Shown one piece after another: positions 1,571-48,194 of a stretch of 64,000 nucleotides of DNA. The position numbers and the translations under genes are program-made. Below the pieces are notes generated by a model that was not told the DNA's origin, searched no databases, and worked only from the letters and a program-made list of their open reading frames with translations. The DNA comes from Sminthopsis crassicaudata (Eukaryota): positions 260,050,937 through 260,114,936 of the forward strand of contig NC_133617.1 in the NCBI RefSeq assembly GCF_048593235.1. Reading direction: 5' to 3'. Numbering within the stretch: the stretch's first letter is position 1; every line of letters begins with the position of its first letter.

Positions 1571-1883
1571 GGGAGGGGCGTCTGACACCTCGTGGGAGCC
1601 GCCCCGCCCCCGGAGCCTCATTGGTTGAGTGAGTGTAGAAAGGGGAGCTGCTGCGGAGAGAGCGCTCGTACTTGCCCAGTTAGTTTGGGAGCGTTTGTTC
1701 CCCAGTTGTCTTGGACCTGGCAGTGGAGGCTGGGAGTCAGGGCATCTCAATAGACTGACCAATTCCTGTTGGCTACCGCGCTCTCCTCCCACCTTGGACC
1801 CGCCACTGAGGGAACCTTCGGGTCCCGACTGAGGGTGTGGGGACGGGGCGGGGTGCGAAGCACAAGGTCTGGGCAGGAGAGCC
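1571..1883 (+). promoter_or_regulatory. Copy 1 proximal promoter / 5' UTR in a CpG island
   Basis: CpG/GC-rich (about 1400-2230); GC box GCCCCGCCC 1601-1609; reverse CCAAT (ATTGG) 1620-1624; TGTAGAAAGGGGAGC 1634-1648; all shared with copy 2. TSS not determinable. Confidence 0.7.
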
Positions 1884-2217
1884 ATGAGCAGCCCGGACGC
1901 GGGGTATGCCAGTGACGACCAGAGCCAAACTAGGTGCGCACTGCCCATGATGATGGCCGGGATGGGCTCCTGCCCGTGGGCAGAGTCTCTGAGTCCCCTG
2001 GGGGAGATGAAGGTCAAGAACGAGTCCGGTGCAGGTGCAGGTGCAGGGAACGGGGGCAGCGCGACTGCTGCAGCTGCTGGGGCTGCGGGCCGTAGCAAAG
2101 GGGAGTCCCGCATCCGGCGGCCCATGAACGCATTCATGGTGTGGGCCAAGGACGAGCGCAAGCGGCTGGCACAGCAGAACCCGGACCTGCACAACGCCGA
2201 GCTGAGCAAAATGCTGG
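1884..2217 (+). CDS. SOX17: SOX17 copy 1 (canonical orthologue), coding exon 1: N-terminus and first half of HMG box
   Basis: gccATG start; translates [15 protein letters not shown]...[36 protein letters not shown]; phase-1 donor G|GTGAGT at 2217/2218, the conserved SoxF HMG intron position. Confidence 0.97.
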
Positions 2218-2904
2218 GTGAGTTGGCATTTTAAAGGAGCAGCAGGAGCCTCTTACTGTCTGTTTCAGTCGTGGTGATCTTCAGTTCCCAAGTGGGGACC
2301 TTAAAGTTCCAAAATAAAATTCTGTGTTTTGTGAGACTACACTTCCTCCTTGCTTTGCTTTTTCCATGCTTTTCTTCCTTCTCCACTTCCCTACCTACCC
2401 CCACCCCCGCCCTAATTGCCTATCCCCCTCTAAACTGATCTTCCTGGTATTGTCACCCTTTTGCATCGCTATTCCCGACTGGCCTTATTACAGAACTCTT
2501 TGAGAGAGGCTACTTTCCGGCGAATCTTTGGAGAGTATAGTTTTTGCTCCCTCTCCTAGACTGGAAGAAAAAACTTCCTTCCACGTACTCCTGGGCAGCT
2601 AGACGGGAGAATTAAAAGAGGAAAAGGGAAAGGATACTGTGTTGTAAACAGAAAGGGCGGAAGGGATTGAATTAAGACGCTTGTCGGAGATTAAAAATTT
2701 TAAGTGTTTTTCTAATAAAAGTAGTTCTCTCTTGGAGTGAAGGATTTTACCTTTCATCCTAGATGCCGCAATGTTTTTTTTTGTTTTTGTTTTTTGTGTG
2801 TGCCATTTTTATTAACGGACTTATTGTAAGGTTTGAGAAAGATCTGTTAGCGGGTGGAGAATGACCAAGTCTGTTCCCTCTTGTTTTTTCCCTTGTCCAC
2901 ATAG

Positions 2905-3806
2905 GGAAGTCTTGGAAGGCGTTATCTCTGGCTGAGAAGAGGCCCTTTGTGGAGGAGGCCGAGCGGCTGCGCGTGCAGCATATGCAAGACCACCCCAATT
3001 ACAAATACCGGCCTCGGAGGAGGAAGCAGGTGAAGAGGCTGAAGCGGGTGGAGAGTGGCTTCCTTCATAACCTCCCTGAGCAGCCGGGCTCGGGACTGGG
3101 TCCAGAGGGCAGAGTATGTGTGGAAAGCCTGGGACTGCCGTTCCATGAGCAGACCTACCACCATGGCCAGGGAGTGCTACCTCCTCAGATGGGACACTAC
3201 CGCGAGTGCCAGAGTTTAGGTCCAGCCTCTCAGTTTGACAGCTACAATTTGCCTACCCCGGAGGCTTCTCCTATGGATGGGATGGAGCCAGATGCAGCTT
3301 TCTTCACCTCCTCACTCCAAGGAGACTGCCAGCCAGGACCCTATAGCTATCCTGTAATCTCTGAGTATTCTGCACATCCTGACTCTCACTCAGGTCCTGT
3401 GCACCACAGACACATGCAGGAACCCCTGGCACACTCATTGCAGAGCTTGATGGGTCCCTCCAACCCTCTGCATATGTACTATGGTCCCATGGGCTCCCCC
3501 CAAGCTGGGAGCAGTGTCCGTGGTTTTCAGATGCAGCATCAGCCAGGATCTAGTCAGCCCTCTCCTCCTCCAGAAGCCTTGGTCTGCAGGGATGGCCTGG
3601 ACACCAGCCAACCTGCTGAGCTTCTTGCAGATGTGGACCGCACAGAATTTGAACAATATCTGCATTTTGTATGCAAACCAGAGTTGGGGCTAAACTACCA
3701 GGGACATGAATCTGGCCTTTCCCTACCTGACACTCATGGGGCCATTTCCTCTGTCGTGTCTGATGCCAGTTCTGCAGTATATTACTGCAACTATCCAGAT
3801 GGGTGA
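2905..3806 (+). CDS. SOX17: SOX17 copy 1, coding exon 2 (spliced protein 411 aa)
   Basis: Pyrimidine tract + AG at 2903-2904; in frame with exon 1 (G|[16 protein letters not shown]...[19 protein letters not shown]); SoxF motifs DRTEFEQYL (3636-3662) and [15 protein letters not shown]; TGA 3804-3806. Confidence 0.97.
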
Positions 3807-4184
3807 CACATCTACCACTCTCCTCCAGCCTGCGGGCCAGCAGCATAAACAGTGTTACACACTTCCTGCAGGAGCTAAGGAAATCCTTTCCCTCCCCCTG
3901 CCCCCCTTTCATTTCTGTGTTTTTTAAATTGAGAGCTGTCTTGGCACCTAATTTATGGTAATTTATTTGACTCTAATCTTAGCAATTTCCTAAAGAGGAA
4001 GTGGGGGTTTGGGGGGCTCATTCTGTCAGGATTTACTCTTAGTCTTGCCCCTAATTCTTGTTAAAATTGCCATTTGTAAATTGGACTTTACTTTTTCTGA
4101 GTAATGTGGAGTAAAATGCTAATCATACTATGAAAGTTCATGTTGTTTGATGAATTGGGGGGATGGTTTTTTATATGAATACTT

Positions 4185-4190
4185 AATAAA
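4185..4190 (+). terminator. Probable polyadenylation signal of copy 1
   Basis: AATAAA about 380 nt after the stop, followed by U/GU-rich sequence (ttttccagtgttg). Confidence 0.65.
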
Positions 4191-5105
4191 GCTTGAACTT
4201 TACTTTTCCAGTGTTGATTCCCAGAAATTTATGAATCATACTACTAATTTAAGTAGAATTGAAGGATTTCATGTTATTGATGAATATTCAGTACTCATTA
4301 AAGAGTGAGTATATGTATTAATATATGTTGTCTTCAGTAAGGATCTGTAAAATCTAGGGTATAGTATTAAATCAAACTGAAACTTTGTCAATTTGAGATG
4401 CTAAGAGTAAAAAAATCATTTCATGATCTGCTTATATTATGGAGACACTTTCCATAATAAATAACTGATACTAAGATAAAATGCTGCATAGCTAGAATTT
4501 GAGTCTGTCTTCACTTTAAGCCCCCAACTTTAAAAGTAAGAGGATAGTTTTTATTATTAATGAACTGATTCATGTTATGAGTGTTTAAGTAGATTCAATT
4601 TTTAGTTCATTTAAAGTAGCTTTAATATTAAAACTAATATGTACATTATCAATAAGTTGGCAGGCATTTATCAAGCTCCTATTGAGTATCAGGAGCTGAG
4701 TTACATATTCTACAGATAACAATTTTGTTTTATTCACCAGAGTGAATATCCAAGCATTCTGTGTGTTATACTCCCTGAAAATGCTGTTAAACCCAAATAA
4801 TTTAAACCATATTTTTTGTTACTAGAAAGTTTAAATTATGCCTAATTATTATTGACCAAAAATCCCTTTAATAATGTTTCTCATTTTCTATTTTGAATGT
4901 TATGTTATAGTAAGTTGAGCTTTTTCATCCAAACTTTTTTTTCTATATAGATTTGTAAAATTATTTTTAGCTTCTATCATTCTTTTATATGAAATGGCAA
5001 CAAAAAAATCATGGGAAGAACAGAACTAATATTGAACTAAGAAACTATGTGCAGTTAAGATCTGAACTGGGACAATAAATCCCCCATCGAGAAGGGTGAC
5101 TTGGC

Positions 5106-5298
5106 ATTGCAAAAAGCATTTTTTAGAGAAGGGTCTCACAACCAAATTGAATTCTGCTTCCTGTGTTCTTGAACTTACAACTTCGTTTCTATGGACTTGG
5201 GATTGCAAAAAGCATTTTTTAGAGAATGGTCTCACAACCAAATTGAATTCTGCTTCCGGTGTTCTTGAACTTACAGCTTCGTTTCTATGGAATTGGAA
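5106..5298. repeat. Direct tandem duplication, 2 x 96 bp
   Basis: TTGCAAAAAGC at 5107 and 5203; GTTTCTATGG at 5185 and 5281; few mismatches. Confidence 0.92.
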
Positions 5299-5360
5299 AC
5301 ATTTCAAATTTGATTTTAATCATTGGGAAAGATGGCTGATTGAGAAGAGACAAAAGAATA

Positions 5361-5506
5361 GGGGGGATTCAGGGCAGTGGATAGAACACTAGCCCTGAAG
5401 TCAGGGTCCCCCAGTTCAAATCTGGTCTCAGACACTTAACACATGACCCTAGAAATATTAAGTCATTTAACCCCAATTGCCTCAGCCAAAAAAATAAAAA
5501 TAAAAA
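5361..5506 (+). mobile_element. Marsupial CORE-SINE (WSINE/Mar-like) with A-rich tail
   Basis: gcagtggatagaacactagccctgaagtcagg...gttcaaatctggtctcagacac...ttaaccccaattgcctcagc + A tail. Confidence 0.8.
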
Positions 5507-6125
5507 TTGGGGGAGGAGTGTTGTGGATAAGTTAAAGAGTTCATGCTTTATTTGCTTCCATTGGTCTCATTCTGTGTAATAGTTGCTCTTCCCCTTGATG
5601 GTTCATATGGACACATATTGGGTAACTGCACTGTTCACTTAGATTTAGTCATTAGTGAATTTAGCCATTCAATTTTGTCCAGTATGCCACTATCAACACT
5701 AAGCTATCCCTATCTATTCTGGAGAGGTGGCAGATAAAATAAAGCTGAGAGAAAATGTGTCATAGTAAGGAGCAGTTGAGAGTTTTAAAGTTTAAGCAGA
5801 GAGGGAAGTATACACTGAAAAAACTGGCTCTGACTCTTTACCCCCAGGGATGGAAGTTAGAGACAATCTTATTAAAGAAATGACATTCTCCCTCCCCTCC
5901 CCTTTTTAACTAGGGAGAGGGATTGGGAAATGAACCTTAGGAAGGATCAGAGAGAAAAGAAAGGAATAAGCATTTATTTGTATCTTACCATGTATTGGAC
6001 ACTGTGTTAAGTATTTTTCATTTGATCACATAGAGGCATGCAAAAATTCTCTTTCTAGATCTTGGATAGTTTTATTTGAAAAATTATTCTTCATATGGGT
6101 TTAGCCTTATGAAAATCAGTTGAAT

Positions 6126-6275
6126 GGTACAGTGGATAAAGCACCAGCCCTGTAATCAGGAGGATCTGAGTTCAAATTTAGTTTCAGACGCTTAATACTG
6201 CCTAACTTGTATGTTCCTGAGTGAGTCACTTGACCTTAATTGCTTTCTCCCCCTATCCCCCTCCAAAAGAGAAGA
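6126..6275 (+). mobile_element. CORE-SINE
   Basis: cagtggataaagcaccagccctg...ctgagttcaaat...gtcacttgaccttaattgc. Confidence 0.7.
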
Positions 6276-7159
6276 AAACCAGTTGCTATAATTTTTTTTC
6301 TGTATACAGCAACCTAGAGATATTTAGAGGAATTAATATGCAAGAAGAAAGTTTTCACTTGGTAGGCTTAATTGACATTTGAAGGAATTCTTTTCTCTGG
6401 GGTTTATAAATTTATTTTAAAATATTTTGAGATATATTCTATATAATTGATTTCCTTTAAAATCTGATGTATTTTCTTTTTTGAATTTAAAAGTATTTTG
6501 AGAAGTGATCTATAGGTTTTAACAAATTGCCAAAAGGATCTGACAAAAAAAAAAAAAAAAAGGTTAAAAGGCTTTTATCGCGAACTTTACTAAAGGCATG
6601 CCCCTTCTTTTCTGGAGGAAAAGATATTAAAAGTTTGATTTCTAATGTCAAAGAGGTATGTAAGAAGCAAAGGAAGAAATCATTCCTCTCCAACTCACTC
6701 CCTTCATTTTTTTGTGTTTCCTGAATTATTTTTTCCCATTGCTTTGCAAGATCAGGAAATACAATATTTGCTTTAGTGTTCTACTATTTTGAAGGTAAGG
6801 AAAAATATAGTGCTGCTAATCCAAAACATGGTTACATTATTGTGTTTTGTTTTGTTGGAATAAGGACATTTACAGAGGAAAGAATGAACAGTAAATTCAG
6901 TAGACTGGTTTGGGAATTGCAAGTTATACTTACTCAGAATAAAAATGCTAAGTTATAATTATGACAAATAATGCAGAATTGAAAGTTAACCGTTCCTTCT
7001 GTGATTTGTGTAAGATTATTAAATGATTCCACAACACCTTCCCGTCCAAAGGGATGAAATTACTCAATGGATGTTAATTTTTAAGGAACATCTCTAAATC
7101 TGAATTGAGTAAATACTTTTGATTGAACTGACTTGGATTTCTATAGACATTTTAAATTC

Positions 7160-8150
7160 AATATATTCAAAACTGAATTTATTTCCTCCCTTACAAACTT
7201 TCCTAATATTATAACCAGAAACACCATACTCCCAGTCACCTGAGGTCACACCTAGTTCTTCACTTTTTCATCTCCCATATCCAACTGATTGCCAAGTCCT
7301 GTGGATTTTATTTTGACGATATCTTTTGAATATACCTCCTTCATAACACTGTCGTTACACTAGTGGGGGTCTTATTTACTCAAGCCTGGATCTTTATAAC
7401 AGCCTAGGGGTTGATTTCCCTGTCCCAAAAGTCTCTCCTCACTCCATTCCTCCTCTTTTCAAAGTGACCTTCCTAAAGCACAAAGTTGTCACCAGTCACA
7501 TATCTATTTAATAACTCTTGTGGCAACCTATTACCTCTAGAAAATATAAAATTCTTTGTCTCTTAAAGCTCTTCATAAAGCTTCTTCCTCTACTACACAT
7601 CCCAAAAATTTTAGTGAAGACATTTTTAGTGATGGAAAAATCACATTTTTTAAAAAATCAAGGTCAAGTTAAATGACTGGAGAAAACAAATTCAAAAGAA
7701 GTCAATTCAACAAACATTTATTAAGCATTTAATACATCTTGGGTGCTGTGGACACAAAGAAAGATTAAAGTTAAAAAGTCCCTGCTCTGAAGGAGATCAC
7801 AGTCTGGTAGAATAGATATAACATGCAAACAATTATGTACAAATATGTATATACAGAAATAATTAGAAAGAATCAACAGAAGGAAGGCAAAACCACAGAG
7901 AGATCTGGAAAGGCTTCTTATAGAGAAGGCGGTGTTTTGAAAGGAATTTACGGGAAAGTCAAGGAAGGCAAAAGATGGAGATGAGGAGGAAAAAAATTAC
8001 AGACATGGGAAAGAGCTAGTGAAAACACTTATAGTGAGGAATGAGAGTGCCCAGTGTCTCTAAAGCACAGAGCATTTGGAATGAAGGAAGGTTGGAAAAA
8101 CAAGAAGGTGCTAAGTTATAAAAAGGTTTAAAAGACAAAGTGTCATTAGC
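7160..8150. mobile_element. Degenerate L2-type LINE fragments (both orientations)
   Basis: L2 3'-end signature caacaaacatttattaagca...ccctgctctgaaggagatcacagtct at about 7710-7810 and purine-rich continuation. Confidence 0.55.
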
Positions 8151-8923
8151 AAAAATTGATAGGGAATGCAAAAAGTTAATGAAGGAATTTCTGTTAGAAC
8201 TATGAGGATAACATTTAATTTTTATTCAAATCTATATTGATAATCAGAATTTAAGATCAATGAGGTACAAATATGCAGAAAATTGACTAATTTTCCAATG
8301 AAATAAAAGACTGATTTCAGGAAAAAGAGTAAGAAATAAAAATAGTTGATGAAATCAGTGGCAATAACAGAAACAGACAGAAATAATATTTCAAAGGAAT
8401 TCAATTTAACTAATGAAAATGTTAAATTGAGAAGTTCTAAATTTCATGGCTGACAATTTTTGAAACCTTTATTCTCAAAAATGATTTGGAGAGTAATTTT
8501 AACATTCACAGAAATGCATAAAAAATTCCTATTTGAAAAAATTCAAAATGTGTTATTCATCAGATCTCCTCTGAACATCTCCTACTACAAAAATCCAAAA
8601 GAGGGATAAGAAAGTGGTAGAAAAAAAGTTTAGTTCAATCCACAGAAAAATCATCCCTTTCTCTCTTCAACCTGTTAAAAGGAAAGAAGTGCTTTTAATT
8701 AATTTCAACAAAAATTTATTCTCCATTGATGAAAAAGTGCTTTTTTCTATTTCTTTCTGAGTCCAGATTATAGAATAAAATGATCAAAATCTTCCCTCTG
8801 CTGCCGAGCTGTCAATTGGATGAAATTTAGGGCATACTGTTTTCAATTAAATTTTATTAAAATGATAATATTGTACTTACTCCACTGAAATGTTTAGATC
8901 ATTTCCAGGTAAAGAAGTTTATG

Positions 8924-9080
8924 TTCTATTTAACCCATATCACATTGCTTTCTATATTGGGGAAGGAGAAGATAAGGGAGAAAAAATTTGGAAACAAAGT
9001 TTTACAAAAATGAATGTTGAAAATTATCTTTACATGTATTTGGAAAAATAAAATATTTTTGAAATAAAATGAAATGAAAT
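8924..9080 (+). mobile_element. L1 3' UTR fragment
   Basis: gggagaaaaaatttggaaacaaagttttacaaaaatgaatgttgaaaattatctttacatgt, matching other L1 tails in the window. Confidence 0.65.
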
Positions 9081-10769
9081 AAATATAGAACACTTCAGCA
9101 TTTAATCCAGTGGTGTGAAAGGAAACCTGTGTTTGGAGCTGGAGTAGATTTGTGTTCAGATTCAACCTTTTAATTAATTGTGTGACCTTGAAGAAGCTTC
9201 TTGACCTTCAGTTTCCTTAAGTGCAAATGAGTAATTAATACTTTTACTACCTAACTCAGGATGTGCAAGAGTCAAATAGGTAGTAAATCTGGAAGCTCTT
9301 AGATACACTAAAACATTATGTAAATGCAAATTCTTAACTTAAAACTCCCATATTTTCATGAGCTACTTAAATGTAAATAAAAATATCCCCATTTCCTTAT
9401 AAATCCCACAAGTCATATTTATGTGTGGATGTATGTTTAAATTATAAAACTATTACCTATAATTACTATTTCAGATTTAGCAGATAAAGTATTCTTATTT
9501 TTTACATTTGTTATTTTATTTTTACTCAATTATATGCAAACAAAATTTCCTAAACTTTTTTTAATGTTGAGTTCCAGATTTTCTTTTTCTCCCTCTTCCC
9601 CTCCCCCCAAGAGTATTATTAAAAATAATTTTTTTTCTGGCTGTTGTATGATTGGTAAAAATACCAAATTATTCTTAGTATAAGGAAAGATTGTAAAAGC
9701 CCAAATTTTGTCCTGATTTCAGTAGTTGTGTGAACTTGGAGAAAATCAATCTATCTCTATGGGTCTGTTTCCTCTTTTGCAAAAAGAAAAAGTTGGACAA
9801 AATTATCTTTAAGGTTCCAACCAGATTTTTTTATTAGTAGGATTCAAATATACCATCTGAACAAATTGGCAAAAACAAAACATGAAAATTCTGCATTTTG
9901 AAATTAAGAATATTGAAAACATGCTCTTCCTTTTAAAAACCAAATTGTTTTGTTAATATAACAATAGCATTTTCAGGTGTGTATGTTGTTTTGTTAAGCT
10001 ACCTTGCTTATTTTACCTGGAATCCTGAATTTAATATTTGTTTGCTATCTCTTTTGGTAGTCAGTTTCCCCTTTCTCTTCTCTTCATATCAATTCAGGTT
10101 TCTAATTTCCCATTAGAAATGTACTGGCTTCTTACCCCCATTTCTGTCTGTTCTCTATTGGTTCTCTCTGCTCCCCTCACCCTCCTCCTGCCTTTTTTTT
10201 CTCCCATAGCCTCTCCTCTACTTAGTACGAGAGGTTCATGCTGAATTTAAGACTTAAGGAAAGTCAAAGCTTAGTGATGATCTTTTCCTGATTATTGCTG
10301 TCAAAGATTTTTTTTTTCCTTCTGAATTAAAGAACTTCTGCCCCACAGTGGTCATTCTGGTTTATCACTGAGCTCTCTGCCACTTATTCTCTTTCTTCAT
10401 ATGCTATGTATGCACTTTGAAAATCCAGGAAAACAACCTAACAAGTCCATCTTTATATTACTGTGCATTTTACAAACATTTCCTCTCTTACTTGTCCTAC
10501 TTATTTTCTTTAGCCAAAGTGTTGGCCAATCAACCCTCATTTTCTAGATATATCAGTTCTGGGCATTAGAACACATTTTCACTTCATTGATTTGGATCCT
10601 AGACTGAAGGAGCAGTCAACCCCCAAAACAAGAGTAGGTTGTTTGCCAGTGTTTGTTAGGGTGCCATTATTGTTTTTGTCTTTTCCTGAGGGTTGCAGAG
10701 GTATATGCCTGTCATTTTCCTTCTTAAAATTCATACATATACACACACATATATGTATTTAAAGGAAAA

Positions 10770-11098
10770 TTTTATTTTTATTTTTATTCATTTTTCCAAA
10801 TTATCCCCTCCCTCCCTCCACTCCCTCCCCCCATGGCAGGTAATCCCATACATTTTACATGTGTTACAATACTACCTAGATACAATATATGTGTGTAAAT
10901 ACCTTTTTCTTGTTGCACATTAATTATTAGCTTCCGAAGGTATAAGTAACCTGGGTAGATAGACAGTAGTGCTAACAATTTACATTCATTTCCCAGTGTT
11001 CCTTCTCTGGGTATAGTTATTTCTGTCCATCATTGATCAACTGGAAGTGAGTTGGATCTTCTTTATGTTGAAGATTTCCACTTCCATCAGAATACATC
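10770..11098 (-). mobile_element. L1 3' end
   Basis: Reverse complement of the L1 tail at about 34180-34480 (high similarity). Confidence 0.85.
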
Positions 11099-23900: not shown

Positions 23901-24669
23901 CTACCATTTTCAGTGTATTTATCTTATGTGTGCTGCTTTACGGATGTATGTTATTGACATTTATTTGTAATATCTTTGAGGGCAGCAAGAGGTTTTATCA
24001 CTTCCCTTACACCTCCCCTTTCCCTAGAGTTTAGCACAAAATAAGAGTTTAACAAATACTTGGCAGATTGATTTGATTGAAAGCTAGATCTATGGTTTAG
24101 ACACCTTAATCCTGGGATATGTGTTACTAAAGTTGCTTCACTGTCATACTATTATTGTTATTTCCCTACTTTATTTTGTTTCTAAAGGAAAGGAGAAAAG
24201 TAAAAAAGATGACTTTTAATGAGAATCTATTATTATAATCTCTTGAGGTCACAATTTTATGAACCCTATAAGGAAAAGGGGTGTGTGTGTCATTACAGGC
24301 TTTGTTGGATATCTTTTGGATATCACCAAATCATTCACCTGATGATATTGAAGGACATGTAAAGAAAGGACATAATAAAGGACAAGCCCCTCTTATAGAA
24401 GCCTAGGACTTGGTTGTCCTTACGGAAGTAGAGGTAGCAACAACTAACTATTCTACAAACAATAGCTTATAGTGAAGCTGCTTTAGATATGATTTTTTAA
24501 AAATGTCTTCATGATTAGTGATCCCAAAATGGAATGAAACTCTCACAATATACAGGGTGAAATACCTTTTGTTTTAGGGTATGCTATGAAAAGGGAGATT
24601 ATTATTCTGGTTCTACTGTTGGTCTTAGATTATCTCTGAAGTCCTAAAATAATAGTGTTGAAGGTCATC

Positions 24670-24840
24670 TAGTTCTCAGCTTTTTAAAATGATTCTCAAA
24701 TCCATATAAGGTCTTGTAACTGGAATGTGGGAGTTGCTAAATTATGATTTATTATCACTAAATGTTTGATTTGCATATTTATATAACTAGGGTCATGTAA
24801 AAATTTCTTGGGTGGAAAGAGTTTAAGAAACCTTGATCTT
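24670..24840. mobile_element. hAT-like MITE; related copies at about 40130-40340 and 49720-49895
   Basis: All three share aattatgatttattat...aaatgtttgatttg and the end aaagtttaagaa(a/g)cc(t/c)tg. Confidence 0.55.
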
Positions 24841-25016
24841 AGTCCCAAATCCTCATTCTTTAGAGGCGGAACTGCATCAGAATTTGACCAAGTTCTAGTT
24901 TGAATGCAGTGTTACTGATGTTAGAACAAGTGCTCTTTCTACTACTGCATATTAGCTATCTTCAATTTTGAGATTTGTGACTTCATAAGATTAATTTTGT
25001 TCATTAATGTTGGCAG

Positions 25017-25906
25017 GGAAGTCCTGGAAGGCGTTACCTCTGGCCGAGAAGAGGCCCTTTGTGGAGGAGGCCGAGCGGCTGCGGGTGCAGCACATGCAGG
25101 ACTACCCCAATTACAAATACCGGCCTAGGAGGAGGAAGCAGGTGAAGAGGCTGAAGCGGGTGGAGAGTGGCTTCCTTCACAACCTTCCTGAGCACCTGGG
25201 CTCAGGGCTGGATTCAGAGGGCAGAGTGTGTGTGGACAGCCTGGGAGTGCCGTTCCATGAGCAGACCTACCACCATGGCCAGGGAGTGCTACCTCCTCAG
25301 ATGGGACACTACCGTGAATGCCAGAGTTTAGGTCCGGCCTCTCAGTTTGACAGCTACAATTTGCCAACCCCGGAGGCTTCTCCTATGGATGGGATGGAAT
25401 CAGATGCAGCTTTCTTCACCTCCTCACTCCAAGGAGACTGCCAGCCAGGACCCTATAGCTATCCTGTAACCTCTGAGTACTATGTACATCCTGACTCTCC
25501 TCTAGGTCCTGTGCACCAGAAACACATGCAGGAACCCCTGGCACACTCATTGCAGAGCCTGATGGGTCCCTCCAACCCTCTGCATATGTATCGTGGTCCC
25601 CCAGGCTCCCCCCAAGCTGGGAGCAGTGTCCATGGTTTTCAGATGCTGCATCAGTCAGGATCTAGTCAGCCCTCTCCTCCTCCAGAGGCCCTGGCCTGCA
25701 GGGAAGGTCTGAGTGCCAGCCAACCTGCTGAGGTCCAACAGTCTGGAATCCACACAGAATTTGAACAGTATCTTCATCATTTATGCAAAGCAGAGTTGGG
25801 GCTTGTCTCTCCAGGTCCTGATGGTGACCATAACCCTTCAACTATTTCCTCTATCATGTCAGATGCTAGTTCTATAGTCTATTACCATAATTATGAAAAC
25901 ATATGA
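25017..25906 (+). CDS. SOX17: SOX17-like tandem paralogue (copy 2), coding exon 2 (spliced protein 406 aa)
   Basis: Acceptor ggcAG at 25015-25016 in the phase needed to join exon 15218-15548; uninterrupted frame [14 protein letters not shown]...TEFEQYL...[16 protein letters not shown]; TGA 25904-25906. Confidence 0.92.
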
Positions 25907-26107
25907 TGCTCTGTGTTCTTCACCGACTGAAGCCAATAATACAAAAGTTGTTGAAGTCTCTTTGCCAGTGAAGGCAAACTAAAGATGTACTGTGTCCCAA
26001 TTTTTTCCAGTTATGTGGGCATTCTTTTAGTTTTATTTAAACTTAAAGCCTTCACATTTCCTGTGGGTATTTGCTAAAGAAAATAATGATAAACCTATGA
26101 ATCATTT

Positions 26108-26412
26108 TTCTTTGTAAAACATTTACATTTCCAGCTACACTTTTTAGACCTTTTTGAATCTACAAATCAGAATAATTTTTTTTTCTCAAGGAAAAACCTT
26201 GTTTCTCAGGAAAGTTGTGAGATTATTTAGCCTGTTTAGTTTCAAAGGCTCTAGTTAAAATTCTTTGTAAAACATTTACATTTCCAACTATACTTTTTAG
26301 ACCTTATTGAATCTACAAATTAGAATAATTTTTTTTCTCAAGGAAAAACCTTGTTTCTCAGGAAAGTTGTAAGGTTATTTAGTCTGTTAAGTTTCAAAAG
26401 CTCTAGTTAAAA
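26108..26412. repeat. Direct tandem duplication, 2 x 152-153 bp, in copy 2 3' UTR
   Basis: CTTTGTAAAAC at 26110 and 26263; CTCTAGTTAAAA at 26249 and 26401. Confidence 0.92.
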
Positions 26413-26456
26413 GTGTTCTCTACCTCTAAAGAATATCACCAAAGAGGGAAAAAAAT

Positions 26457-26462
26457 AATAAA
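26457..26462 (+). terminator. Candidate polyadenylation signal of copy 2
   Basis: First AATAAA noticed after the stop (about 550 nt), with GU-rich ggttgtggtg downstream. Confidence 0.45.
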
Positions 26463-28529
26463 CTTGATGAAAGGTTGTGGTGATTATTGCTACATGAAGT
26501 TGAATAATAATCAAGGCTTTCTTATGCATATATTCATGAATGTAATCTTGCTTTTTATATCATCTGCATTTTAAAATAGATGTCCCTTACATTTCAAACA
26601 ATGTAAAAAAGACTTTGTCAATATAATCAATCAAGTCTGCTATCATATGCTGTTTCACATCCACAATCTCCTATAGAATCTGTCTTCCCATAACTTTCAT
26701 AATTTTATAAGATTTAGTTTTGCTCTTGTTTTTTTATTCTGCCATTAATTTTGTGATAGTCATTGTACACATTGTTTTTCTGATTCTATCAATTATGTTT
26801 TATTTTGCATTATTTCATAGAAGTCTTTTTATGGTTCTCTATTCTCCCTAATCATGATTTGTTACTTCAAAGTAATATTTCATTGTATTCATACACCACC
26901 ATTCCCTAGCTTATGGACTTCTATTTTTTTTTTAATTCTTTGCTACTACAAAAGTGTTTTATTGAAAGTAAATATGGAGCCATTTTTTCTATCCCTGGAC
27001 CTTCTTGGGGTATGTGATTTTTTTTTTTTGAGTAAATTCTTTCTATTGGACCTTGGTGTCCCATATAGGAGAATTTCCCTCGAAATAAGGTATTAAACTT
27101 GGCTCCGTTAGGATTAGAAGAGAATCTCTAGGCAGAATCTATGGCCTGTGTTATTACTGTTGAGAATCCCTGCTATGGTAATTCTTTAGGTTCAGTCTAG
27201 CAGAAGAATAGATTAGTAGCTTTAACTAGGGGGGACCATTTTGGAAAAGGGTCCTCTTCTGTCACTATTAGCAGCAACTGCTGACCAAATGACTTGAAAG
27301 AATAGACCACCCCAAGAACCCTGGAAGTGATTTTCCTCAATTACTTCTGTTTCCAAATCAGCCATCATTCCAAAAATCAGTCTGTCAAGATGTGGCCAAG
27401 CTATTTAAGACTTAGCAAAAGAAGGTTATCGCTATCACTAGATGTCCTTACCATTGTTAAATTGTCAATTAAAAAAAAAAAACACTAAGATTTTGTCAGT
27501 GAAAATAAAAAAGTTATATCATTTATTATTTTGTGTATCAACCCTTAAATATCAAAGGACTTTTAAAACTAGTTTGTAGCTGAAACTACCTTCTATTTGT
27601 ATTCCTAGAGCTCAGAGTACTATTTGAACATATGTAAGTGCTTAATAAGTAATTTTAAAAATTTCATTTGTGCAGCAGCTAAGGATCTACACAAGACATC
27701 CAGGGAAATACATATGTAGGATCAGTTAAAGTCAGTAATAAAATAGGATTATGGTACTCGCAATTTTTAGTCTTTCCTGGCCTTTTGTTTCTGTATACTA
27801 TGATAAATGGCACCAATGAACTGTTTTGTGTATACTAAGATTTTTTTTTTCTCCAGTGATGAATCCACCTCAGTAATTCTCCAATCAGGTGACAACTATT
27901 ATAGATAAGGTATTCTTGTTGGGTTCCTCTGCATCCTTTCCCTTTGATATACTTTCTAACACAATTCAATGACAAATATTAAATTCACTATGTATAAAGT
28001 AGGCAAGATAGATGGTTACATGGGCTAGAGCTTTGGGCCTAAAGTTGGGAAAGAGTCAAAATGTGCCCTCTGGCATTTACTAGTTATATGGCCACGGACA
28101 AATTACTTGAGCTTTAGTTTGCCTCAGTTTCCTCACTAGTAAAATATATTTTCTAGAGTTGTGATGATTGAATGAAAATAGTGTTTAGAGGCCATGTAAC
28201 ACAGGCCTTGGCACAGAGTTAAAAGTTTAATAATACTGGTTTCCTTTTCCCTTTCCCCACCTCAGGGTTTGGGGAGATGCTGTCTTGCCTGTTGGAGACT
28301 TAAGATTTATAGCTAAGAGGAATATAAAGGAGTATACAGAGTCATGCCCTCACAGAGTTTAGAATGTAATTGTGAAGAAGAAAAAAACTACATAGGCAAA
28401 ATGGGTCATGAAACAATTTTTGCTATGTTCACAGGAAATTTAAGTACTACACTTCAGAAGAGACACCTGAATTGAAGCAGTGGGAATCATGTGATTGAGT
28501 ATTAGAACTTCTTAGAATCACTTCTAGTG

Positions 28530-37209: not shown

Positions 37210-37413
37210 NNNNNNNNNNNNNNNNNNNNNNNNNNNNNNNNNNNNNNNNNNNNNNNNNNNNNNNNNNNNNNNNNNNNNNNNNNNNNNNNNNNNNNNNNNN
37301 NNNNNNNNNNNNNNNNNNNNNNNNNNNNNNNNNNNNNNNNNNNNNNNNNNNNNNNNNNNNNNNNNNNNNNNNNNNNNNNNNNNNNNNNNNNNNNNNNNNN
37401 NNNNNNNNNNNNN
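37210..37413. other. Assembly gap (204 N)
   Basis: N run; a minus-strand SINE (37414-37508) abuts it. Confidence 1.
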
Positions 37414-46253: not shown

Positions 46254-46410
46254 NNNNNNNNNNNNNNNNNNNNNNNNNNNNNNNNNNNNNNNNNNNNNNN
46301 NNNNNNNNNNNNNNNNNNNNNNNNNNNNNNNNNNNNNNNNNNNNNNNNNNNNNNNNNNNNNNNNNNNNNNNNNNNNNNNNNNNNNNNNNNNNNNNNNNNN
46401 NNNNNNNNNA
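46254..46410. other. Assembly gap (157 N)
   Basis: N run, within CR1/L3-like remnants. Confidence 1.
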
Positions 46411-47339: not shown

Positions 47340-48194
47340 ACTCTTTCTAAATATCATCAGGCTGCTTGAACTTTATGTTTACAATTTGGAATCACAAGAG
47401 AGGAAGCTAGGAGCATAGTAAAAAGCTGTACAGCTTGTCTTCCTTTCCACACTCCTACACTCCCTCCAGGGAAGAATCCTTGTGGTTTGAGACCCAATGA
47501 AATATGGCAAATGGATGTGACCCATTATAAATCTTTTGGTCGTCTGTCTTTCATCCACGTGGTAGTAGATACCTTTTCAGGATTCACTTTTGCAGTGCCA
47601 ACAGCAAAAGAGACAGCCCAAGTGGTCACTGAATTCCTTATCCAAGCATTTGCAATTATAGGTGTGCCACAAGAAATAAAAACAGATAATGGACCTGCAT
47701 ATAATTTTAAACATTTTGAGCACTTCTGCGTGCAGTATAAGATATTACACATTACTGGAATACCTTTTAATCCGCAAGGTCAGGCAATAGTAGAGAGAAG
47801 AAACAGAGACATTAAGACACTCCTCCAAAAACAAAAGAAAGGGGGAGCCACAGATAGCCCTAGGGAACTTCTAAATTTAGTTCTCTATACCAGTAATTTT
47901 CTAATTTTGAACAAAGATGCACTGGCTTTGGCAGACAGGTTTTATAACCCACCGGAAGGGCAGTGTCCAGTGCGAGCAGCTCCACTGTCCTTAGATAATC
48001 ACCAGGTGATGTAGAGAGACCTAGAAAGTGGTGAATGGAAGGGACCAGATAGGTTAAGTGCCTGGGGGAGAGGGTTTGCTTGTATCTCTACAGATGGAGA
48101 AGGAATCAGATGGGTGCCAACGAGTCGTATTCACCTTGTCCATCGGAGAGAGACAGAAAAAGAGAAAGACTTCAAAACAAAGGAGAAAATCTAA
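47340..48194 (+). pseudogene. Class II (betaretrovirus-like) ERV integrase, disabled
   Basis: One frame: YHQAA*TLCLQFGITREEARSIVKSCTAC (HHCC), NPCGLRPNEIWQMD...KTDNG...IVERRN (D,D35E), QVM*RD...WKGPD...WGRGFAC; premature stops at 47367 and 48012. Confidence 0.92.

Follow-up and report, generated by a model that had tools for sequence, protein, structure and literature searches.

Tandem duplicates that evolve in concert are classically represented by the primate fetal gamma-globin pair and the alpha-globin pair, and tandem sox17 paralogues are known from other vertebrates, sox17 alpha/beta in Xenopus and sox17/sox32 in zebrafish. SOX17 itself is a central regulator in the specification of endoderm, hypoblast and germ line. 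The present analysis concerns a window of 64,000 nucleotides (nt) from the dunnart Sminthopsis crassicaudata (contig NC_133617.1, positions 260,050,937 to 260,114,936; coordinates given below count from its first letter), in which two SOX17 genes, copy 1 and copy 2, are located in tandem on the + strand. As in the Xenopus and zebrafish pairs, a second SoxF gene adjoins sox17 and has kept the HMG box and the central domain. As in the globin pairs, paralogues within a species are closer to each other than to their orthologues over a bounded segment, and the flanks record an older age.

In the initial annotation of the sequence, an ancient tandem pair with homogenised exons was proposed. This core idea is borne out by phylogenetic trees, by a gap in silent divergence and by the introns. 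The locus very probably represents an old tandem SOX17 duplicate undergoing recurrent interlocus gene conversion that is confined to the coding exons. Comparison of the sequences establishes how old the duplication is, that similarity forms a mosaic with conflicting phylogenetic signals, and that the process is confined to exons.

Mosaic similarity of the two SOX17 genes

Each gene consists of two exons, and the single phase-1 intron is located in the HMG box after ...SKMLG in both dunnart copies as well as in devil, koala, manatee and green turtle. The arrangement in the window is as follows.

1571-1883, +, copy 1 upstream homology block with GC box, inverted CCAAT box and 5' untranslated region (UTR)
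1884-2217, +, copy 1 (canonical SOX17) exon 1, from ATG to the phase-1 donor; predicted to be converted
2218-2904, +, copy 1 intron, 687 nt, phase 1; unconverted
2905-3806, +, copy 1 exon 2, completing a gene of 411 codons
2905-3592, +, copy 1 exon 2 body with the rest of the HMG box and Sox17_18_mid; predicted to be converted
3593-3806, +, copy 1 C-terminal tail and stop, the canonical SOX17 tail; unconverted
14907-15217, +, copy 2 upstream homology block, aligning to 1571-1883
15218-15548, +, copy 2 exon 1, predicted to be converted; synonymous divergence (dS) from copy 1 0.136
15549-25016, +, copy 2 intron, 9468 nt, matching the copy 1 intron in position and phase
25017-25906, +, copy 2 exon 2, completing a gene of 406 codons
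25017-25704, +, copy 2 exon 2 body, predicted to be converted
25705-25906, +, copy 2-specific C-terminal tail and stop, kept in all marsupial copy 2 genes
25907-27500, +, copy 2 3' region, unlike the copy 1 3'UTR, with contigs from three probable RNA runs

The exon translations match, exactly and exon by exon, the NCBI proteins XP_074134503.1 (copy 1; P0126) and XP_074134508.1 (copy 2; P0133) of S. crassicaudata, and the residue bridging the exon parts in both proteins is a split-codon glycine. Exons were analysed one by one with the split codon omitted, and the two NCBI entries were used as full-length products. In the copy 2 protein, HMG_box is detected with 88.7 bits (Pfam cut-off 25.4) at residues 77-144 and Sox17_18_mid with 76.5 bits (cut-off 25) at residues 209-259; both domains exceed the Pfam cut-offs in the copy 1 protein, too.

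The introns of the two copies differ 14-fold in length (687 nt vs 9.5 kb). In view of copy 2 exons lying 9.5 kb apart, a chimeric or mis-joined second copy was considered, but nothing was found in favour of such an artefact. Independent assemblies of other marsupials display the same two-gene layout with a long copy 2 intron; copy 2 genes span 8.6-12.7 kb in seven other marsupials, and copy 1 genes 1.8-2.0 kb in the five species where the span was read, four of them among these seven. Copy 2-specific sequence is also contained in contigs of sequencing runs from six studies, and runs of N are found elsewhere in the window (37210-37413, 46254-46409). By the independent assemblies and the run contigs, an assembly artefact is ruled out, and its probability is put close to nil.

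When the first 8 kb were compared with the rest of the window by BLAST, only two blocks were obtained beyond short low-scoring repeats, 1571-2226 versus 14907-15557 (84%) and 2903-3785 versus 25015-25885 (88%). Alignment of the two genes confirmed the mosaic described in the initial annotation. The first 45 coding nt are identical, and the HMG part of exon 1 carries two synonymous and no non-synonymous changes in 37 codons. Similarity ends at the donor, where copy 1 reads gtgagttggcatt and copy 2 gtgagtggggctc, identity being gone from intron base 7; in front of the acceptor it is absent again, with differences at 26 of the last 40 intron columns. Exon 2, said to be similar to about 3590/25700, shows a jump in differences located at 3593 in copy 1, corresponding to 25705 in copy 2. 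Upstream of this position 4-12 differences per 100 nt were counted, downstream 29-32, and identity of the body between the two SOX17 copies is about 92-95%. The reported collapse of the last ~170 coding nt holds as far as sharp divergence is concerned, but the last ~200 nt remain homologous and in frame: residues such as TEFEQYLH and ISS.MSDASS.VYY.NY are common to both tails, which can be aligned. Similarity of the 3'UTR is absent as claimed, and the 2-kb 3' flank gave no BLAST match (word size 7, E<1e-3).

Silent sites reveal the same division. Nucleotide analyses were performed for dunnart, devil and koala, with manatee and turtle as outgroups. According to the Nei-Gojobori method, the dunnart pair shows a dS of 0.136 in exon 1 and 0.17 in the exon 2 body overall (0.16-0.25 in two parts of it), while the last 57 codons reach 0.94 with a non-synonymous divergence (dN) of 0.39. 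Paralogue dS in body and tail, respectively, is 0.14-0.17 and 0.94 in dunnart, 0.18-0.21 and 0.96 in devil, and 0.04-0.06 and 1.18 in koala. Between koala and dasyurids, dS amounts to 0.29-0.42 in the body and 0.18-0.29 for tail orthologues. Calculating dS per partition, as had been proposed, yielded a gap in silent divergence of about six-fold between body and tail. If only codons specifying the same amino acid are considered, silent divergence (Ks) is still 0.69-0.80 in the tail and about 0.15 in the body, so that the many replacements do not account for the high tail dS. Synonymous differences in tail and body are distributed with Fisher P = 7e-7 (dunnart), 6e-6 (devil) and 2e-15 (koala), and a runs test on exon 2, performed with our own Sawyer-type implementation and not with the GENECONV program, gave P=0.036, 0.002 and <1e-4 in the same order. 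The clustering of differences is not due to chance.

Conflicting histories of body, tail, introns and upstream block

Protein searches with copy 2 exon 2 combined with cluster look-up revealed both paralogues complete in 11 American and Australasian marsupials, Monodelphis, Gracilinanus, Dromiciops, Macrotis, Sarcophilus, Antechinus, Sminthopsis, Phascolarctos, Vombatus, Trichosurus, and Notamacropus. In the protein search, pairs of 'SOX-17' and 'SOX-17-like' entries were detected in marsupials only. Protein trees were calculated from 22 marsupial sequences and six outgroups, the body being taken from the N-terminus to just before CRDGL. In the body tree, the copies pair within species, or within Dasyuridae or Vombatiformes, and nine changes of the copy label are needed. 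The tail tree is grouped by paralogue, with the copy 2 clade supported by 100/100. Constraining the body to one copy 2 clade costs 301 log-likelihood units and is rejected by the approximately unbiased (AU) test with 7e-67; forcing the tails of one species together is rejected with 6e-7 to 3e-50. The initial annotation had suggested trees of separate partitions, with the 5' part clustering within species and the C-terminal ~60 codons by paralogue, and these topologies were obtained.

Individual sites convey the same picture. Among 1022 coding positions of the body, one site is fixed between the paralogues, versus 46 at which the koala pair and the four dasyurid copies differ by lineage. In exon 1, no fixed paralogue site is present and 15 sites separate the koala pair from the four dasyurid copies; in the exon 2 body the numbers are one and 31. 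In the tail, 44 fixed paralogue sites and no lineage-shared ones were found in the three species. These patterns bear on an explanation without any conversion, in which the body of an old duplicate would be held similar by strong purifying selection including synonymous sites. The dN of 0-0.02 in the HMG box between the dunnart copies agrees with such constraint. However, orthologue dS of 0.3-0.4 in the same codons indicates that silent sites are free to change, and constraint cannot produce 46 shared koala-versus-dasyurid sites along with just one fixed paralogue site. Synonymous constraint is ruled out by the dS values and the site patterns, and as the sole explanation it deserves hardly any credence.

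The introns and flanks were compared by blastn with word size 7. Between orthologues, introns and the 2-kb flanks on the 5' and the 3' side could be aligned over 75-100% of the length, with 83-87% identity between dunnart and devil and 70-76% between dasyurids and koala. Paralogous introns and 3' flanks are 0% alignable in dunnart, devil and koala by the same procedure, in koala although body dS is only 0.04-0.06. The copy 1 intron of dunnart aligns over 100% with its devil and over 86% with its koala counterpart and over 0% with any copy 2 intron; the dunnart copy 2 intron aligns over 96% and 86%, respectively, with the copy 2 introns of devil and koala. It had been pointed out that intron and flank identity comparable to that of the exons would speak for a recent duplication; no such identity was found between paralogues, while orthologous introns align across about 60 million years (My).

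The low body dS (0.04-0.2) and the clustering of body sequences within species could be accounted for if the gene had been duplicated recently, in this lineage or independently in each of them, and one copy had then changed fast at its C-terminus. Such a history is at odds with paralogous introns and 3' flanks that cannot be aligned when orthologous ones retain 70-87% identity, with a copy 2 intron that is 86% alignable between dunnart and koala, with a single copy 2 tail clade over 11 species (100/100) and with the rise of tail dS, not only of dN, by a factor of six. Since paralogous introns and 3' flanks are unalignable and orthologous ones are alignable, recent or independent duplications cannot explain the pair. 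The intron and flank alignments, the tail clade and the AU tests rule them out, and the chance that such a history applies is considered negligible.

A different behavior was observed for the 313 nt preceding the ATG of copy 1, in which a GC box and a CCAAT box are found along with conserved parts of the 5'UTR and whose identity between the paralogues is about 75%. Homology of this block ends abruptly on its 5' side. The promoter had been assumed to be periodically homogenised, but in dunnart, devil and koala the sequences of the block form paralogue groups with 94/94 support; the block has therefore been left unhomogenised since the koala-dasyurid split, and this part of the original proposal has to be abandoned for the three species. 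The identity of about 75% reflects either older conversion or selective constraint. In dasyurids, the proximal ~100 nt are 87-91% identical between paralogues versus 79-84% to koala, a hint that this part may constitute an older tract. Upon addition of manatee and turtle, both marsupial blocks are placed together (94/95) on a long stem, the manatee sequence being barely alignable. This tree is compatible with duplication on the marsupial stem as well as with early conversion of the block.

Extent of the probable gene conversion

In the scenario favored by these data, a tandem duplication of SOX17 took place before living marsupials radiated, and both genes stayed intact. Non-allelic gene conversion at the DNA level, repeated independently in each marsupial lineage, would replace sequence of one copy by that of the other in two coding blocks, the first reaching from the ATG almost to the donor and the second from a little inside the acceptor to codon ~340. 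Tracts would end where homology ends, at the unalignable intron (687 nt vs 9.5 kb) and at the 3' boundary 3593/25705, beyond which the final ~70 codons, along with 3'UTR and flanks, have been diverging ever since the duplication. Heteroduplex repair limited by heterology is the presumed molecular mechanism. In the copy 2 tail, selection for a divergent transactivation end may operate, which would at the same time block the extension of tracts.

Dunnart, devil and koala have the 3' limit at one and the same position (copy 1, 3593; copy 2, 25705), and in didelphids it lies about nine codons farther 3'. In devil copy 2 exon 2 (L002 21705-22576), six codons (...LACREG...) are deleted exactly at the boundary of body and tail. 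Copy 2 of the wombat (Vombatus ursinus, P0122) contains copy 1 sequence about 20 codons farther 3', at residues ~340-360 up to DRTEF, unlike the remaining copy 2 proteins, which keep their own sequence there. A tract apparently entered the otherwise protected tail in the wombat, and the 3' boundary appears to be movable.

Tract ends at the intron are most clearly seen in koala. Identical runs of 213 nt, beginning at -13 and reaching into exon 1, and of 429 nt (3164-3592) are present, yet the margins beside the intron have stayed different: three positions differ among the final 35 nt of exon 1 and seven among the initial 30 nt of exon 2. Unconverted margins of this kind beside a non-homologous intron are indicative of a homology-dependent process acting on DNA rather than of a spliced complementary DNA (cDNA) template. 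Repair from spliced SOX17 cDNA, that is RNA-mediated conversion, was nevertheless considered, as tracts end 6-30 nt from donor and acceptor in three species and introns are never entered. Yet a cDNA template runs across the exon junction, and the koala differences cluster on both sides of it. Moreover, the 3'UTR and the tail belong to the mRNA but are unconverted, the koala 5'UTR is not homogenised, and the recipient retains its intron. A cDNA template is thus judged improbable, if less so than the other alternatives described so far.

Regarding time and direction of DNA-level conversion, sites common to the two dunnart copies only, as compared with both devil and both Antechinus copies, include the T in HEQTYH and the S in LQSLMG. 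They suggest that small tracts may still be continuing in the dunnart lineage. The bulk of the dasyurid body was homogenised last before the split of dunnart and devil. In protein trees, terminal branches of copy 2 exceed those of copy 1 in most species, and for orthologues of dunnart and devil the dN/dS of the body is higher in copy 2 (about 0.17) than in copy 1 (about 0.10). From these values we infer that copy 1 was probably the main donor and that conversion proceeded predominantly from copy 1 to copy 2.

Several observations weigh against recurrent conversion confined to exons, or narrow its basis. Tract ends nearly coincide with the ATG and with both splice sites, and on the ATG side the end is sharper than the limits of homology require, because the proximal 5'UTR is still 84-91% identical. 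The dasyurid body already groups by paralogue and few dunnart-specific shared sites are present; the grouping implies that conversion has been rare in this family since before the dunnart-devil split. Nucleotide data come from three marsupials, and the evidence for Monodelphis, Gracilinanus, Vombatus, and Macrotis is at the protein level only. Finally, the pattern is read from sequence comparison, and the conversion events themselves were never directly observed.

Copy 2: age, use and comparison with known systems

Both the copy 2 tail and the long intron occur in two American didelphid opossums, in Dromiciops from South America and in species from Australia. Since didelphids and Australidelphians share the pair, the duplication predates crown Marsupialia, which are roughly 80 My old, and the long copy 2 span in every species looked up indicates that the long intron is as old as the pair. 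All copy 2 proteins carry one tail signature, which includes HNPST.SS.MSDASS.VYYHNY(Q/E)NI and is four residues shorter than in copy 1. In all copy 1 proteins the tail is the canonical one of SOX17, kept as far as turtle and ostrich. Tail Ks for same-amino-acid codons is 0.69-0.80 between marsupial paralogues, 0.16-0.33 between koala and dasyurid orthologues and 0.96-0.98 between marsupial copy 1 and manatee, values resting on about 18-38 silent sites (<40) and therefore rough for dating. By this comparison, the duplication is much older than the Australasian radiation but not clearly older than the therian split.

Origin of copy 2 from the sox17 duplicate lineage of fish and frogs had been raised as a speculation. 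It is unsupported and disfavoured. In a maximum likelihood (ML) tail tree of 40 taxa, copy 2 is located inside mammals (94/79) and amniotes (99/99*), with 61 columns and a long branch. On the same 61 columns, AU tests gave p=0.43 for grouping with the second Ascaphus paralogue and p=0.55 for a position outside canonical amniote SOX17; all alternative origins, pre-therian ones included, obtained p values of 0.40-0.70 and none was rejected. The copy 2 tail signature was not found outside marsupials in a tail-limited search with 18 candidates, which needs shared 5-residue words and is weak evidence of absence. Monotreme SOX17 was not among the best 120 matches listed in the protein search with copy 2 exon 2. 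Two SOX17-type genes on one contig were noticed in the birds Pezoporus (P0048/P0049) and Ammospiza (P0065/P0068) and in the basal frog Ascaphus (P0091/P0119). Within each bird pair the two tails are almost identical, which suggests recent duplicates, haplotypes or concerted evolution.

Copy 2 could also be a pre-therian or even older SOX17 paralogue that was lost in eutherians and whose true age is masked by conversion outside the tail. Silent divergence of the paralogue tails (0.7-1.2) is similar to that between marsupials and eutherians (1.0-1.3) and thus compatible with this view, which we regard as doubtful. If it applied, conversion of the body might be tolerated or favored because both proteins must recognise the same targets, and a division of labour specific to marsupials, for example between hypoblast/endoderm and another SOX17 role, would reside in the tail left unconverted and in the private 9.5-kb intron.

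Whatever its origin, copy 2 is intact in 11 species. For koala-dasyurid orthologues, tail dN/dS is 0.3-0.4 in copy 2, indicating purifying selection, and 0.04-0.08 in copy 1. The C-terminal EF(D/E)QYL is a transactivation/beta-catenin motif, and the core TEF(E/D)QYLH is kept in all copy 2 proteins with replaced flanking residues. The copy 2 tail may have diverged in function.

Among the runs from six studies that contain copy 2-specific sequence, three small ones from three studies yielded contigs from 25657 to beyond 27500, covering at least 1.6 kb downstream of the tail. In these three runs the intron at 24000-25016 is empty except for a 30-nt repeat; a larger, DNA-like run covers the intron. 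One run contains copy 1-like as well as copy 2 contigs at 25285-25396, which differ exactly at the four paralogue-specific sites. Transcription of copy 2 is probable from these contigs, which carry neither strand nor junction nor level and come from runs whose kind was guessed as RNA. One of the contigs, 3871 nt long, extends to about 30.2 kb. Provided that the small runs represent RNA, a transcript with the copy 2 tail would extend more than 4 kb past the stop, as an unusually long 3'UTR or as a separate overlapping transcript.

Repeats are found close to both genes. Closely behind the copy 2 stop, at 26108-26412, a 152-nt unit occurs twice in tandem (93% match), and run contigs break nearby; about 1.3 kb downstream of copy 1, at 5098-5296, 2.1 repeats of a 96-nt unit (95% match) are located. 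Farther downstream, an open reading frame of 175 amino acids (47487-48014, +) matches the Pfam rve integrase core with 81 bits and is probably a remnant of a long terminal repeat element or endogenous retrovirus.

Gene conversion between tandem duplicates is textbook knowledge and both genes are already part of the NCBI annotation, but no description of the marsupial SOX17 pair or of its concerted evolution was found in full-text literature searches. The pair is already being mislabelled by orthology pipelines, and the names in the NCBI annotation are inconsistent. In devil and Gracilinanus, copy 2 is called 'SOX-17' and copy 1 'SOX-17-like', the reverse applies to Monodelphis, Antechinus, and Macrotis, and in several species both copies are 'like'. 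The homogenised body is plausibly the cause of these swaps. Interest in the pair is moderate and derives mainly from the gene involved and from practical consequences for marsupial developmental work. Dunnart and opossum are under development as models for marsupial embryology and gene editing, and body-targeted antibodies, probes, short RNA sequencing (RNA-seq) reads and guide RNAs match both genes; only tail, 3'UTR and intron discriminate copy 1 from copy 2. The pair also offers a clean case, in multiple lineages, of exon-confined conversion through roughly all of crown marsupial history, with a conversion boundary that coincides with a functional module.

Compared with canonical therian SOX17, both copies are alike in HMG_box, Sox17_18_mid, the phase-1 HMG-box intron and the TEFEQYL core, whereas in copy 2 the residues around EF(D/E)QYL and the last ~45 are replaced, four codons are lost and the intron has 9-11 kb. 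Unlike the Xenopus and zebrafish pairs, the copy 2 tail signature was found only in marsupials, and the ML tree nests copy 2 in mammals, with other placements not rejected by the AU tests. With the globin pairs, the SOX17 pair shares boundaries that appear to be set by loss of homology and by selection. In contrast to them, it encodes a master developmental transcription factor, and conversion appears to have occurred in parallel in every sampled marsupial lineage since before the crown radiation. It is restricted to coding sequence, in two blocks split by a wholly unalignable intron, and the last ~70 codons are spared in all lineages but one.

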